Shown here one piece after another: positions 55,183 to 60,578 of a stretch of 64,000 nucleotides of DNA (positions are counted from its first letter, which is position 1; every line of letters begins with the position of its first letter). The notes beneath the pieces are model-generated. The model did no database searches. It saw only the letters and a list, made by a program, of their open reading frames with translations, and was not told the origin of the DNA. The stretch lies in sequence record NC_070950.1; one strand, written 5' to 3'. The position numbers and the translations under genes are program-made.

Positions 55183-55204
55183 AATCGGGAGGAAACTCCC
55201 GATT
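55183..55204. terminator. Hairpin, probable terminator
   Basis: AATCGGGAG-GAAA-CTCCCGATT. Confidence 0.65.
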
Positions 55205-56891: not shown

Positions 56892-57350
56892 ATGAAAAGC
56901 ATCGTTTTAGTTTTACTCTCTTTCTTTTCCGCTTCCGTATTTGCTGGTGCAATGGGAATGGTCGATCCTCTGGACGTTGTAGGTGATCGTTGTGCCCCAG
57001 GTGATATCGTCTTTTACGGTCAAACTGAAAAAGGACATAAAGAAGTTCTCGTCTGCCGTTGGGACAATGATGTCTTTTACTCCTACGGTAAGATCGGTCA
57101 GAAACCCGAGCTGTATCTCAAAGTCAACGTTCGCGACGTAAGGGCTCAGGTTGAAGACACCGACAACACCAGCGGCGAACAAGTCATTATCAAAAATGGT
57201 AATGTGCTTTATTACGTTGGCGCGAAATCTTACTTCAACGAAGCCAAAGATGTAGGTTGGGTTAACGTTACCGATACCGATGGTAAAAAGATCGTTAACA
57301 TTCCACTGGTAGGCAGCGGAACCATAAGCGATATCCGTAACCAATTTTAA
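56892..57350 (+). CDS. Exported hypothetical protein
   Basis: Signal peptide MKSIVLVLLSFFSASVFA; Cys pair; YSYGKIGQKPEL. Confidence 0.8.
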   Translation: MKSIVLVLLSFFSASVFAGAMGMVDPLDVVGDRCAPGDIVFYGQTEKGHKEVLVCRWDNDVFYSYGKIGQKPELYLKVNVRDVRAQVEDTDNTSGEQVIIKNGNVLYYVGAKSYFNEAKDVGWVNVTDTDGKKIVNIPLVGSGTISDIRNQF

Positions 57351-57364
57351 CTGAGAAGATTAAG

Positions 57365-57712
57365 ATGACGTATAAAGAGCTCAACGAACTACTCTCTACC
57401 AAAACACCGACCGAACAGTTTGTTTGGTTGGAAGCTGAAGTTAAACGCCTCGGTCTCGAGATCACCGATAAGCGCCACGCCGATTGGATGACTGAAGGAA
57501 AGCAAGATCCTTTCGGAGGACAGTATGACGGCGATGACCGCCCGCATCAGTCTCAACGTACCGACTATGTCGTAGGGAACGCGGTTTACCTGGCGGATCG
57601 GCACGACCTCAGTCTCATCGCTCAACAAACCGAAGCTAAAGAACGCATCCGCTGGCTATCCCGGCAGTTGTATAAACATCGATTAATCCAGGCCATCCTT
57701 TTAGCCGAATAA
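57365..57712 (+). CDS. Hypothetical phage protein
   Basis: 115 aa; DW...G..DP.G..YD and AKERIRWLSR motifs. Confidence 0.75.
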   Translation: MTYKELNELLSTKTPTEQFVWLEAEVKRLGLEITDKRHADWMTEGKQDPFGGQYDGDDRPHQSQRTDYVVGNAVYLADRHDLSLIAQQTEAKERIRWLSRQLYKHRLIQAILLAE

Positions 57713-57725
57713 CAAAGGTATCACC

Positions 57726-58079
57726 GTGAAAAACATTTTAGGTCTCATCATCCTGTTCTTTCTGGCAACAACCCCGGCCCGAGCCCACTTGTTTGGACCG
57801 GTGGACCAAGTCAACATCCGTGGTTACGAAACGACTCTGATCAACATGCGGTTAAAATCGGATCGTAACGACTACTACGCGTTTAGCGTCGGAGACGTCA
57901 CTAAGGTGGACAGTAAGGGCAATCCGGTTAAGATGTACGTGATGGCTGGCATGGAAGCCATTTTCCCGATGACCATCAGTAACAAGTACATTAAAAACGA
58001 CCACATCAAGATCTGTTCCTGGCCTCTTGATGCCCACTCGCAATTCACCGGAAAGGTATGCTTCGATGTTCGCGTATAA
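57726..58079 (+). CDS. Exported Ig-like / pilus-chaperone-like protein (gene 1 of trio)
   Basis: GTG start after AAAGG; signal peptide ending ARA; alternating beta strands; C-terminal ICS...KVC Cys pair. Confidence 0.7.
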   Translation: MKNILGLIILFFLATTPARAHLFGPVDQVNIRGYETTLINMRLKSDRNDYYAFSVGDVTKVDSKGNPVKMYVMAGMEAIFPMTISNKYIKNDHIKICSWPLDAHSQFTGKVCFDVRV

Positions 58080-58461
58080 AACACTCATCATCCTCATTGC
58101 AGCGTTTTTCACTAACCTGGCGTTAGCTGACGCACCCTACATGACTAACAACACCGCCTCGTCTTCTGAACGAGTACAGGTCGGTGATGTGAGTTGCGAT
58201 TCTTCTAAACCACAGTCGACTATTAATATAGGAGCTTACGGTAACAACGGCAATCGTTACAGTTACGAAGATTCTGATAAAGGCGGGTTCGTATCCATCT
58301 CCATCCCTATCGGGGAATCTGCCGTAAAGACGGATTGCTCGCGCCTCTATGACTTAGGCGTGAAGATGAAAGAAGTTGAATTAAAACAGCGTGAAATGGC
58401 TGTTGCTGCCGCCGAAGAAAACCTTCGGCTCCAACAGCAGCGAGCTTTAGATTTCAAATAA
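58066..58461 (+). CDS. Exported protein with a beta region and C-terminal coiled coil (gene 2 of trio)
   Basis: Start moved to ATG 58066 after GAAAGG; signal peptide ending ALA; GDVSC...SISIPIG...DCSRLY then heptads. Confidence 0.75.
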   Translation: MFAYKTLIILIAAFFTNLALADAPYMTNNTASSSERVQVGDVSCDSSKPQSTINIGAYGNNGNRYSYEDSDKGGFVSISIPIGESAVKTDCSRLYDLGVKMKEVELKQREMAVAAAEENLRLQQQRALDFK

Positions 58462-58506
58462 CCAACCTTAACGTTATACCAACCAACCCAACAGGAAAAT
58501 TCCTAA

Positions 58507-58998
58507 ATGAAAAAGATCATGATCGCTATTGCTCTTCTGTCTACCACAGCATTCGCCAACGCCGCTTCTGAGCAGGTATGGAACGCGTCTCTCACCAACA
58601 GCCAAATCACCTGCGGCATCGACTACACCGGCGGCACCCAGGTTGAAGGCGGTATTCTTACCGCTAACGAAAGCGGGACGAATACATCCAAAGCGATTTC
58701 CTTCACCCTGATCGCGAACACGCAAAACGTCAACTGGCAGATCACCGAAGCCAAACTGGTTCAAAACACCGGCCGGTTTGATTTCAGCGATAACCTGCTG
58801 AGTGTAAACGATAAGACCAAAACGTCGGTCTACATCAACGATCAGGAATACGCGTGGCCTGACGCCGCTCAAGCTAAAGCGTTGGCCAGCAATTCTCGCG
58901 TGATCAAACTGGCGCCGAAAATCAATCTGGAACAGTCGGTCTTCCCGATTGGCCAAACAAGGATCGCTGGGAAAATTGTGATTACGTGCACGCAGTAA
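58507..58998 (+). CDS. Exported pilin/fimbrial-subunit-like protein (gene 3 of trio)
   Basis: Signal peptide ending ANA; Cys near each mature terminus (ITC ... VITC); terminal alternating strand. Confidence 0.75.
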   Translation: MKKIMIAIALLSTTAFANAASEQVWNASLTNSQITCGIDYTGGTQVEGGILTANESGTNTSKAISFTLIANTQNVNWQITEAKLVQNTGRFDFSDNLLSVNDKTKTSVYINDQEYAWPDAAQAKALASNSRVIKLAPKINLEQSVFPIGQTRIAGKIVITCTQ

Positions 58999-59012
58999 AT
59001 TAGGTTTACTTA

Positions 59013-59048
59013 TTTTAACCTACCGACCGGTTGGTCGGTAGGTTAAAA
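59013..59048. terminator. Intrinsic terminator closing the trio
   Basis: 16-bp stem TTTTAACCTACCGACC-GGTT-GGTCGGTAGGTTAAAA. Confidence 0.85.
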
Positions 59049-59069
59049 ACTTTTAAGTAAGGATATGAA

Positions 59070-60089
59070 ATGGGGCGGCTACCAACGAAATCTAAACATG
59101 AAATATACCTTGAAAGAGTTAAATTAAAACATAATAATTTTTATGATTACTCTAAAACTATCTTTACCGGGTCTCTGAACACAGTAAAAATAATTTGTCC
59201 TATTCACGGTGAATTCGAACAACGAGCATCCAAACATTTAGAGGGGTGTGGGTGTAAACAATGTGGAACCGACCGACAGCGAAAGGCTCTAAATAAAACA
59301 ACGGAAGATTTCATTAAAGAAGCCAAGGCAATTCACGGAGAAACATACGACTACTCACAAACGGTTTACTCAAATGGCCACTTCCCGGTAAAAATAATTT
59401 GCAGAACTCACGGTGTATTCTATCAGACGCCCTCCAATCACATTGGAGCGCATAAACATGGGTGTCAAAAATGTGTCTATGATAGCTTACGACTCGGATC
59501 TAAAATATTCATTGATCGGGCGAAAGAAGTGCATGGCGATAGGTACGATTATTCTAAAGTCGTTTACAATAAAAACTCTGAAGAGGTCGTCATCGTTTGT
59601 AAAGAACATGGGGAGTTCAAACAAACACCAAATACCCACACTGTCGACAAATCAGGGTGTCCCAGCTGTTCCAAAAAATTCACCAGAATGGTTCCGCTAA
59701 CGGTTTACTTTATAGTAAGCGAGGACCTTAAATTCATCAAGATAGGTGTTACACGATCTTTAGTAGGTAGATTAAAAACTCTCTTCTCTGCACGCCACAC
59801 CAAATTAATAGGATTCAATTCTTTCTTTTACACTAGAAAGTTTTATTCTGATGGTTACGAGGCTGGAGAAGCGGAGCGTAGTTTCAAAAATATGTTTTCA
59901 GAGTATAACGCCGGTTTCCTTATTGAAGGCTACTCTGGATCAACAGAATGGTTCAAGCTTAACCAAATAATTCTTAACTGGATAAAGGAGAATATAGACG
60001 ATCAACTCGATTTAACAGCACCGCCCTCTAACGCACGGTTAGGTTTAGACTCGATTCCTGGACAACCCGCATCCAAGGCAAGATTGTGA
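59070..60089 (+). mobile_element. Free-standing homing endonuclease: three Zn-ribbon repeats plus a GIY-YIG-like (T5orf172-type) domain
   Basis: 3x F....K..HG..YDYS...Y......V.I.C..HG.F.Q....H....GC..C; then VYFI.....IKIGVT....RL..L. Confidence 0.8.
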
Positions 60090-60179: not shown

Positions 60180-60578
60180 ATGTCTACTATCTCTCAAAAC
60201 TCAACTACTGATATGAACGGCAAAGTGACTTTTAATAAAGGCGCTTTCCCGCAGCTGATGACCCCAACTTTCATGATCTTCATCTGGGCCTATCAGCCGG
60301 TTATGAACGCCATCCAGGGCTGGAACCCGGCCATCGGTTTCATCTTCGCCTTTGTCGTCTTCCTGATCTGGTTTTGTCATGACCGCGCATTCTTGGCTTC
60401 ACAAGGTGCGTTCGTCCCTCACTGGCTTTGGTTCCTTTTCGTTCCGGTGTATATCTATAAACGCCAGAAACGTAACGGTAATAGCCGTTGGTGGGTTGTC
60501 TTCTGGCTGATCAGTGTATTAATGGGTCTGGTGGTTTCCGCCGCCACTATGGCAGTATTCCATCCCCAGGGTTACTAA
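60180..60578 (+). CDS. Multi-pass membrane protein
   Basis: About four TM segments; WLWFLFVPVYIYKR motif. Confidence 0.8.
   Translation: MSTISQNSTTDMNGKVTFNKGAFPQLMTPTFMIFIWAYQPVMNAIQGWNPAIGFIFAFVVFLIWFCHDRAFLASQGAFVPHWLWFLFVPVYIYKRQKRNGNSRWWVVFWLISVLMGLVVSAATMAVFHPQGY

Follow-up and report, generated by a model that had tools for sequence, protein, structure and literature searches.

A syntenic trio of exported, disulfide-paired proteins with a predicted pilin-like member in Klebsiella jumbo phage Miami and unrelated lytic phages

To our knowledge, the proteins that virulent phages export to the envelope of an infected cell are few, and consist of exclusion proteins, spanins and lysis regulators. 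Llp of phage T5 and Cor of phages T1 and phi80 are small exported exclusion lipoproteins that block the receptor, by which the infected cell and the progeny are protected, and their genes are located beside tail-fibre or receptor-binding genes. More generally, exclusion genes and morons often occupy positions adjacent to tail-fibre or lysis genes. An example of a different kind is P-FimU, the prophage-encoded FimU-like minor pilins of Pseudomonas phages, which become part of the host's type IV pilus and block rival phages (PMC12952977). The subject of this paper is a group of three adjacent genes, here called gene 1, gene 2 and gene 3, in a DNA stretch of 64,000 nucleotides from record NC_070950.1 (the window). 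The window derives from the Klebsiella jumbo phage Miami (MT701590.1, 253 kb), with 100% identity across the 3.4 kb that was compared, and coordinates in MT701590.1 are obtained by adding 62000 to those of the window. The three genes are gp130, gp131 and gp132 of this phage, and each is annotated in the deposited record as a hypothetical protein.

The trio is a strictly syntenic, horizontally mobile and phage-restricted accessory cassette of lytic phages, and we firmly conclude that its three exported, disulfide-bonded products function together. What they do together is a matter of graded likelihood. The explanation that we tentatively place first, possible rather than probable, is that they form a complex in the envelope of the infected cell, with gene 2 as the anchor, gene 3 as a docking element or a subunit of short polymers, and gene 1 as an adaptor. 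Coordinates of the genes and of their parts are collected in Table 1.

Linkage and distribution of the cassette

Profile hidden Markov models of the three families were scanned against every locus fetched. An enteric-type gene 2 was present in 17 complete loci, and in every one of them gene 1 lies directly upstream and gene 3 directly downstream, which bears out the co-occurrence proposed in a preliminary description of the window, and throughout these loci gene 1 overlaps or abuts gene 2. Among the loci, at least six phage lineages without relation to each other are represented, and one locus is on a Providencia contig. The trio is carried by the Miami-like phages YC1, KPN8, BUCTxx100 and VB_ZK_P1, by Eowynvirus (Eowyn), by the group of FBKp24 and KpLz with genomes of about 300 kb, by the Erwinia Vequintavirinae phage pEp_SNUABM_01 (147 kb), by a 360-kb uncultivated virus genome (UViG) from IMG/VR, and by several metagenomic phage contigs. 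The genes that flank the trio differ from lineage to lineage. In pEp_SNUABM_01 (locus L008, 4649-5872) the trio is situated inside an array of phage tRNA genes, a position that is another sign of an inserted cassette.

Outside phages the trio is very rare. It was not found in 5,426 complete Escherichia coli genomes or 72,556 plasmids, nor in one genome each of 185,579 species, with the exception of a single contig of 592 bp. This contig (NZ_JANLCJ010000583.1) belongs to an assembly of the actinobacterium Herbiconiux daphne, carries a partial gene 1 and a partial gene 2, and most likely represents phage contamination of the assembly. The sole clearly bacterial copy occurs on contig JBEEVP010000011 of Providencia rettgeri, where the trio is bracketed by fragments of open reading frames (ORFs) that resemble transposases of the IS200/IS605 type of insertion sequences (IS; locus L004, 6219-6407 and 8946-9188). 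A PapC/PapD fimbrial operon lies 3.2 kb away, and ParA/ParB genes and an integrase fragment are nearby; the surroundings look like a plasmid or an island. The PapC/PapD operon is separate from the trio, and an usher gene and a PapD-type chaperone gene are linked to the trio in none of the 17 loci, so that the earlier characterization of the module as usher-less can be maintained.

Scans against Pfam, NCBIfam, PADLOC and PHROGs returned nothing above threshold for the three proteins, gene 2 giving a weak match to phrog_37374, and sequence and profile searches of the Protein Data Bank (PDB) with all three families returned nothing relevant. The preliminary description knew of no described function for such a trio, and the literature that was searched likewise holds no account of it. 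The names and hosts in some database records look inconsistent: the record OR529409.1 has the name 'Stenotrophomonas phage BUCTxx100' and shares about 97% identity with Klebsiella phages in this region, and the records MN871447-MN871453, named 'Serratia phage Kp...', give Klebsiella pneumoniae as the host.

In Miami, the overlap of 14 nt between genes 1 and 2 and the gap of 45 nt between genes 2 and 3 are both exactly as first described. The hairpin that closes the trio is also real: when folded with its flanks it reaches −30.1 kcal/mol (z = −6.0), none of 200 shuffled sequences folds as well, and a terminator annotated in GenBank at window positions 59011-59054 covers it. The impression of a raised GC content could be quantified, with 48.6% for the trio against 42.9% for the window, which places the trio in the top 3.6% of segments of the same size (about 2 standard deviations above the mean); for the complete Miami genome a value of 43.9% was published (PMC7844079). 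The proposal that the genes constitute a three-gene operon has to be qualified for Miami. No promoter or terminator was found between gene 1 and the upstream genes, and the nearest annotated terminator upstream of the trio (window 55185-55204) is 2.5 kb away. The Miami trio is thus the distal end of a longer co-directional string, gp124-gp132, and no stand-alone operon.

All three genes are under purifying selection in the Miami-like phages. For gene 1, the nonsynonymous divergence (dN) is 0 at a synonymous divergence (dS) of 0.08-0.14, and for gene 2 the corresponding values are 0.003-0.007 and 0.03-0.08; gene 3 has dN/dS ratios of 0.09-0.22.

Three exported proteins and their predicted folds

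Signal peptides were judged with a heuristic (a K/R-containing n-region, a strongly hydrophobic core of 10 residues and a small-x-small site) and not with SignalP. By this measure they are present in every homolog of gene 1 (n = 12), gene 2 (n = 11) and gene 3 (n = 23). In the family alignments the invariance of residues starts directly after the Ala at position −1, and the mature N-termini are conserved in all three proteins. Each protein has exactly two Cys residues and all of these are invariant (C97/C112 in gene 1, C44/C91 in gene 2, C36/C161 in gene 3). Both the signal peptides and the Cys pairs had been noticed in the window and hold in the families as a whole. A lipobox is found at the end of the signal peptide in none of the three Miami proteins.

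The product of gene 3 gives the clearest structural indication. Its AlphaFold2 (AF2) model, built from an alignment of 19 sequences, has a pLDDT of 87.7 and a pTM of 0.76. The nine best matches to the PDB obtained with Foldseek are CfaB, which is the CFA/I pilin, and CS17 (E-values 2.6e-4 to 1.4e-2, probability 0.97-1.0, TM-scores 0.35-0.47), the first of them being CfaB entry 4y2l with an E-value of 2.6e-4, a probability of 1.0 and TM-scores of 0.43-0.47. They are followed by further donor-strand filament subunits, namely uromodulin, TasA, the pilin domain of PapG, Csu and Fim subunits and an archaeal filament. In the viral library BFVD the best match is an unnamed protein of 157 aa (E = 1.3e-7, TM-scores 0.56-0.58). 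A pilin-like immunoglobulin-like (Ig-like) fold, as had been suggested for this protein, is in agreement with top matches that are donor-strand pilins.

The mature protein starts with 16 residues that precede the first Cys and form a candidate donor strand. The extension is conserved to the same degree as the core: E22, W25 and A27 do not vary among the 19 sequences, Q23, V24 and N31 hardly vary, and the aromatic-x-Ala motif of the extension persists in relatives at 23% identity. In the model this segment has a pLDDT of about 86 and is without strand. Its length equals that of the donor extension of DraE, which is 16 residues as well (PMC5625045). A disulfide between strands A and B occurs in 90% of fimbrial subunits (PMC5625045), whereas the only Cys pair of gene 3 ties the first strand to the last strand; the notion that the trio shows the disulfide pattern of chaperone-usher subunits is not supported by gene 3, and the likeness to Csu-type (SCPU) pilins proposed along with it is without sequence support.

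A pilin-like fold with an N-terminal extension would also suit a mimic, which enters or caps a chaperone-usher pilus of the host, or titrates its chaperone, and so changes or removes a surface structure that rival phages use. The replacement of a type IV pilus component by phage FimU offers a parallel (PMC12952977), the hosts are fimbriate Enterobacterales, and the P. rettgeri copy of the trio lies at 3.2 kb from a PapC/PapD operon. We nevertheless regard such a mimic as improbable. No host pilin family resembles gene 3 in sequence, the disulfide of gene 3 is not of the A-B type, which is the one that chaperones check, and a mimic would not account for the invariable presence of genes 1 and 2 beside it; the adjacency in P. 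rettgeri is a single case, in which IS fragments and a toxin-antitoxin gene intervene.

For gene 1, the AF2 model was made from an alignment of 3 sequences, as the word-indexed protein search gave 2 homologs. It has a pLDDT of 72 overall and about 80 for the mature part, and contains 7 strands. The residues F53, V72, F80, P81, C97 and C112 are invariant in the family alignments. Foldseek matches are to Ig-like domains of a generic kind (domain 3 of HAP2, GbpA, SYG-2, SiiE, CARDB, CsgC and CsgH), and none of the matches to the PDB is as good as E = 0.001. According to the model, gene 1 is a complete 7-strand generic Ig-like sandwich.

The earlier designation of this protein as chaperone-like is not sustained in the PapD sense. 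PapD-type chaperones are absent from the 50 best PDB matches, the 12 homologs are without a Pfam signal for PapD, and Pfam scans over the same 12 homologs gave no recurrent match of any kind. A direct comparison by hhalign with the Providencia PapD chaperone finds nothing, and a PapD chaperone has two domains (PapD_N and PapD_C, about 200-230 aa together), whereas mature gene 1 consists of one domain of about 96 aa. An escort role by another mode of binding may still be considered.

The properties of genes 1 and 3 also bear on a simpler possibility, namely that the products form a soluble periplasmic hetero-complex and no fibre. Such a complex would block an envelope component of the host or of a rival phage, such as an ejection protein, a periplasmic enzyme or the periplasmic face of a receptor, and the pilin fold would serve only as a binding scaffold, a use to which Ig-like sandwiches are commonly put. 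In agreement with this, gene 1 matches generic Ig domains only, including at weak E-values the periplasmic curli modulators CsgC and CsgH, neither an usher nor any other known exporter of the outer membrane is encoded, and the mature N-termini are conserved in all three proteins, as is predicted for binding mediated by peptides. On the other hand, the best matches of gene 3 are specifically to donor-strand filament subunits and not to generic Ig domains, and the hairpin of gene 2, with one variable hydrophobic face and one invariant polar face, would be unusual for a soluble core. We consider a soluble binder unlikely, but worth keeping in mind.

Gene 2 is the best-conserved member of the trio. 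Following the conserved mature N-terminus, it is predicted to form an amphipathic beta-hairpin with strands at about aa 51-59 and 74-83, each of 9-10 residues in which the faces alternate strictly. One face is polar or small and invariant (T52, N54, G56 and Y58 in the first strand, S79 and P81 in the second), whereas the opposite face is hydrophobic with variable identity; the connecting loop contains the invariant residues Y65, D71, K72 and G73, and the invariant pair C44-C91 is located at the base of the strands. The C-terminal helix is a putative coiled coil, since it shows the 3-4 spacing of hydrophobic residues (106/109/113/116/120) and the indel by which 4 of the 11 homologs differ measures exactly 7 residues, or one heptad.

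The order of a hairpin and a long helix recalls outer-membrane efflux proteins. Five of the 11 gene 2 homologs match the Pfam family OEP (PF02321) at 14.6-18.6 bits, which is sub-threshold at a cut-off of 22. These five matches share one register, in which gene 2 residues of about 44-122 align with model positions of about 33-110 and the hairpin is included. Miami gene 2 itself gives no match to OEP. As a control, the families of gene 1 (12 members) and gene 3 (23 members) are without a comparable recurrent weak match. With comparator sequences taken from NC_000913.3, the best local alignment on E. coli TolC falls on the region of the second hairpin (residues 269-317) for 6 of 15 homologs; in TolC, the reported Pfam match comprises residues 232-427, plus a second matched stretch. 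Direct comparisons of gene 2 with TolC, CusC and MdtP were not significant: hhalign, which was run against TolC alone and against six repeats of TolC, CusC and MdtP, gave E-values of 0.3 and 0.62, hmmsearch gave no match, and Smith-Waterman alignments gave shuffle z-scores of at most 1.2 for the enteric proteins. Membership of the TolC/OEP family is not supported, since the scores are below the gathering threshold of PF02321 and there is a single hairpin and helix where the family has two tandem repeats. On these comparisons the TolC likeness of gene 2 is to be taken as a lead only.

If this lead is followed to its end, the trio might constitute a minimal export pathway that operates without an usher or a PapD chaperone. 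Gene 2 would then form a TolC-like pore in the outer membrane, gene 1 would act as the escort, and gene 3 would be a donor-strand polymer that appears at the surface as a fibre or cap; the four-gene module of Vibrio phages discussed below would be the same machinery in a form assisted by a lipoprotein. The recurrent OEP matches in a single register, with the controls for genes 1 and 3 negative, the strictly alternating hairpin strands of 9-10 residues, the local alignments that land on TolC residues 269-317 and the pilin-like fold of gene 3 would all be accommodated. Against it stand the lack of a significant direct match to TolC, CusC or MdtP and the presence of only one hairpin and one helix per chain, a type of pore for which no solved precedent was found. 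Moreover, the OEP matches could reflect the composition of the coiled coil alone. We regard an export pathway of this type as fairly improbable, both as a description of the Miami trio and in its extension to the Vibrio module.

A parallel module in Vibrio phages and the neighbours of the trio

A homolog of gene 2, here designated C, occurs in 153 Vibrio phage records (hhalign 96.4%, E = 1e-9), and a gene for a pilin-like protein, A, in 179 Vibrio phage records. The gene order was read in five loci that represent four lineages, with siphophages of 60 kb, 79 kb and 83 kb and the T5-like phage pVp-1, and was found to be A, B, C, D. Protein A is exported and pilin-like with Cys residues near both ends, B is exported and beta-rich with a C-terminal Cys pair, and D is a small lipoprotein of which the gene overlaps the 3' end of C. 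All four proteins belong to PHROGs of unknown function. The comparison of gene 3 with Vibrio A (probability 35%, E = 4e-4, with the first Cys aligned) is only suggestive of a relationship at the sequence level, and for gene 1 and Vibrio B the E-values of 0.1 and 0.033 lack significance. In the Vibrio records with OZ accessions that were read, the deposited coding-sequence calls do not correspond to gene C, and in D93 gene D is called too long.

The location of the Vibrio module provides additional information. A large ORF, which probably encodes a tail fibre, precedes the module in all five loci, and lysis genes follow shortly downstream in two of the five: in pVp-1 the genes for holin and endolysin are found about 0.4 kb downstream, and in K249 an annotated endolysin gene about 1.4 kb downstream.

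A position directly after a probable tail-fibre gene would fit a role of the proteins as virion components or as factors in tail-fibre assembly. Such a role is so improbable that we give it hardly any weight. Cleavable Sec signal peptides and disulfide pairs place the proteins outside the cytoplasm, where virions are assembled, and the genes around the cassette in the jumbo phages are non-structural genes or tRNA genes.

The proximity to lysis genes raises the question whether the trio is related to lysis, with gene 2 as a spanin-like or lysis-regulating protein that contributes to disruption of the outer membrane or to lysis timing. The Vibrio lipoprotein gene overlaps the 3' end of the gene 2 homolog in the manner of overlapped spanin pairs, the pVp-1 module is placed about 0.4 kb upstream of holin and endolysin, and in one metagenomic trio locus genes for cell-wall hydrolases are present 2-3 kb downstream. 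Yet gene 2 and its Vibrio homologs retain small-x-small signal-peptidase sites, and because these canonical cleavage sites are kept, gene 2 is not expected to be membrane-anchored like i-spanins. In Miami there is no lipoprotein ORF that overlaps or follows gene 2, zero lysis genes are annotated in the 15-kb region around the trio, and the periplasmic part of gene 2 is mostly beta with one short helix. A lysis function is in our opinion very unlikely. Two observations on gene 2 may be added. The candidate identity of an i-spanin with an uncleaved N-terminal anchor was rejected on the conserved small-x-small sites that precede the mature N-terminus in all homologs, as judged with the heuristic, and a search of the + strand of Miami from 58150 to 58650 for a lipoprotein partner yielded no ORF of at least 20 aa with a lipobox.

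Just upstream of the trio in Miami, gp128 encodes an exported protein of 152 aa with a signal peptide. It was considered as a fourth member of the cassette and ruled out, as it is confined to the Miami-like phages and does not accompany the trio elsewhere. In Miami and YC1, gp129 (115 aa, without signal peptide, GC content 50.6%) is found between gp128 and the trio; the Raoultella phage VB_ZK_P1 is without gp129, and the gp128 homolog there abuts gene 1. Downstream of the closing hairpin, gp133 is an ORF resembling a homing endonuclease, with GIY-YIG/T5orf172, DUF723 and zinc-ribbon domains (phrog_681, E = 7e-50) and a GC content of 39.6%. It is present in Miami and missing from the same spot in YC1, KPN8, BUCTxx100 and VB_ZK_P1. 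The amino-acid differences between gene 3 of Miami and that of YC1 and VB_ZK_P1 concentrate in the last 40 residues, at the side of gp133, and this cluster may be a co-conversion tract. The gene after the endonuclease, gp134, encodes a small product in which several segments are hydrophobic and which probably resides in the inner membrane; this gene is kept in both relatives that were checked (YC1 and VB_ZK_P1).

Table 1 Positions of the trio, its parts, its Miami neighbours and the related Vibrio modules (window coordinates, except where a locus is named)
Feature	Position	Strand	Description
Gene 1 (Miami gp130)	57726-58079	+	GTG start, 117 aa; signal peptide aa 1-20; predicted Ig-like beta-sandwich of ~96 aa (mature); C97/C112 in last two strands
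Gene 2 (Miami gp131)	58066-58461	+	131 aa; signal peptide aa 1-21; conserved mature N-terminus; predicted hairpin stapled by C44/C91; putative C-terminal coiled coil
Gene 2 amphipathic beta-hairpin (predicted)	58213-58314	+	aa 50-83, from per-column analysis
Gene 2 C-terminal helix, putative coiled coil	58339-58449	+	aa 92-128
Gene 3 (Miami gp132)	58507-58998	+	163 aa; signal peptide aa 1-19; predicted pilin-type Ig-like domain; C36 at start of first strand, C161 at end of last strand
Gene 3 mature N-terminal extension	58564-58611	+	aa 20-35, 16 residues before first Cys; candidate donor strand
Closing hairpin	59013-59048	+	16-bp stem, 4-nt loop, short T run
gp128	56892-57350		exported protein
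gp129	57365-57712		between gp128 and trio
gp133	59070-60089		homing-endonuclease-like ORF
gp134	60180-60578		probable inner-membrane protein
Vibrio module, locus L009	2217-3472		
Vibrio module, locus L010	2208-3484		
Vibrio module, locus L011	2154-3433		
Vibrio module, locus L023	3986-5301		

Proposed function and relation to described systems

In the envelope complex that we tentatively favour, gene 2 would oligomerise via its coiled coil, after which its hairpins would attach to the outer membrane or enter it and so provide an anchor. The N-terminal extension of gene 3 would enter the Ig fold of a partner, leading to docking or to short polymers in a way that is similar to donor-strand pilins. 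Gene 1 would be coupled to gene 2 in translation and would be an Ig-like adaptor or escort, and not a chaperone of the PapD type. The assembly would alter the envelope of the infected cell in favour of the phage. The use to which this is put is the least certain element of the proposal. By analogy, phage-phage competition, through receptor masking or superinfection exclusion, appears the most likely, in view of where the Vibrio module lies, what is generally known of exported phage proteins and the example set by P-FimU (PMC12952977).

Several results weigh against this explanation. The TM-scores of gene 3 to pilins are moderate (0.40-0.47), and DSSP assigns 7 strand segments to the model, with zero in the N-terminal extension that would have to serve as the donor strand. 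No sequence method (Pfam, PDB profiles, HMMER) ties gene 3 to a pilin family: among its 23 members none of the matches to the pilin families Fimbrial, Fimbrial_CS1 and SCPU is better than E = 0.69, and when the gene 3 profile was run exhaustively with HMMER against 1.84 billion representatives, the only clusters returned were 10 of its own family, pilins being absent. The model of gene 1 depends on an alignment of 3 sequences, and the TolC-like signal in gene 2 is sub-threshold and fails the direct tests against TolC. Furthermore, the cassette of the jumbo phages is not located near tail or lysis genes, and the proposed role in competition derives from analogy and from the gene position in Vibrio phages.

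The occurrence of the cassette across unrelated jumbo phages and rV5-like phages, and of a parallel form in some 150-180 Vibrio phages, points to a common and unstudied function that is directed at the envelope. The trio appears to be undescribed, and in it gene 3 would, if the model is correct, be a subunit of the donor-strand type in a context that is new both genetically and mechanistically. Should gene 3 indeed be handled as a donor-strand subunit without an usher or a classical chaperone, the range of ways in which Gram-negative cells are known to deal with such subunits would be widened. If exclusion or receptor masking is the function, the trio bears on competition between phages of Klebsiella, and hence on the interpretation of phage mixtures. 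For annotation, the result is more immediate, as three families of hypothetical proteins can now be labelled as parts of one exported module with linked genes.

It is useful to compare the trio with described systems in some detail. Class 5 pilins of the alternate chaperone-usher pathway, CfaB and CS17, are the best structural match of gene 3 and similar to it in size (about 145 aa in mature form), and like it they are exported proteins with an Ig-like fold and an N-terminal extension. Gene 3 differs from them in having no detectable sequence similarity and in a Cys pair that joins the first and last strands, and the trio differs in that it is not accompanied by genes for a CfaA-type chaperone, an usher or a tip adhesin and that the genome is that of a lytic phage. 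The fibres of TasA in Bacillus, the archaeal 0406/bundling pili and the polymers of uromodulin and ZP proteins are weaker structural matches of gene 3 (E = 0.03-0.07). These filaments are donor-strand polymers that are made without a chaperone-usher machine, as would be the case here, but they belong to eukaryotes or function on the outside of a single membrane, whereas gene 3 would face a Gram-negative envelope.

For gene 2 the comparison is with the half-repeat of TolC, which has the same order of elements, with an amphipathic beta-hairpin ahead of a long helix. TolC has about 430 aa and two full repeats, whereas mature gene 2 has about 110 aa with one hairpin and one helix. With respect to exclusion proteins, Llp and Cor are comparable to the Vibrio module in gene position and in the involvement of a small lipoprotein, but the Miami trio is without a lipobox, comprises three proteins instead of one, and has no similarity to them in sequence or fold. 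P-FimU has the fold and assembly of type IV pilins, is encoded by single genes of temperate phages and has a homolog in the host, whereas the trio occurs in virulent phages and is without a host homolog. As an exported pilin-type protein of phage origin that alters the surface of the host, P-FimU is the closest functional precedent for the role that is proposed here for the trio.

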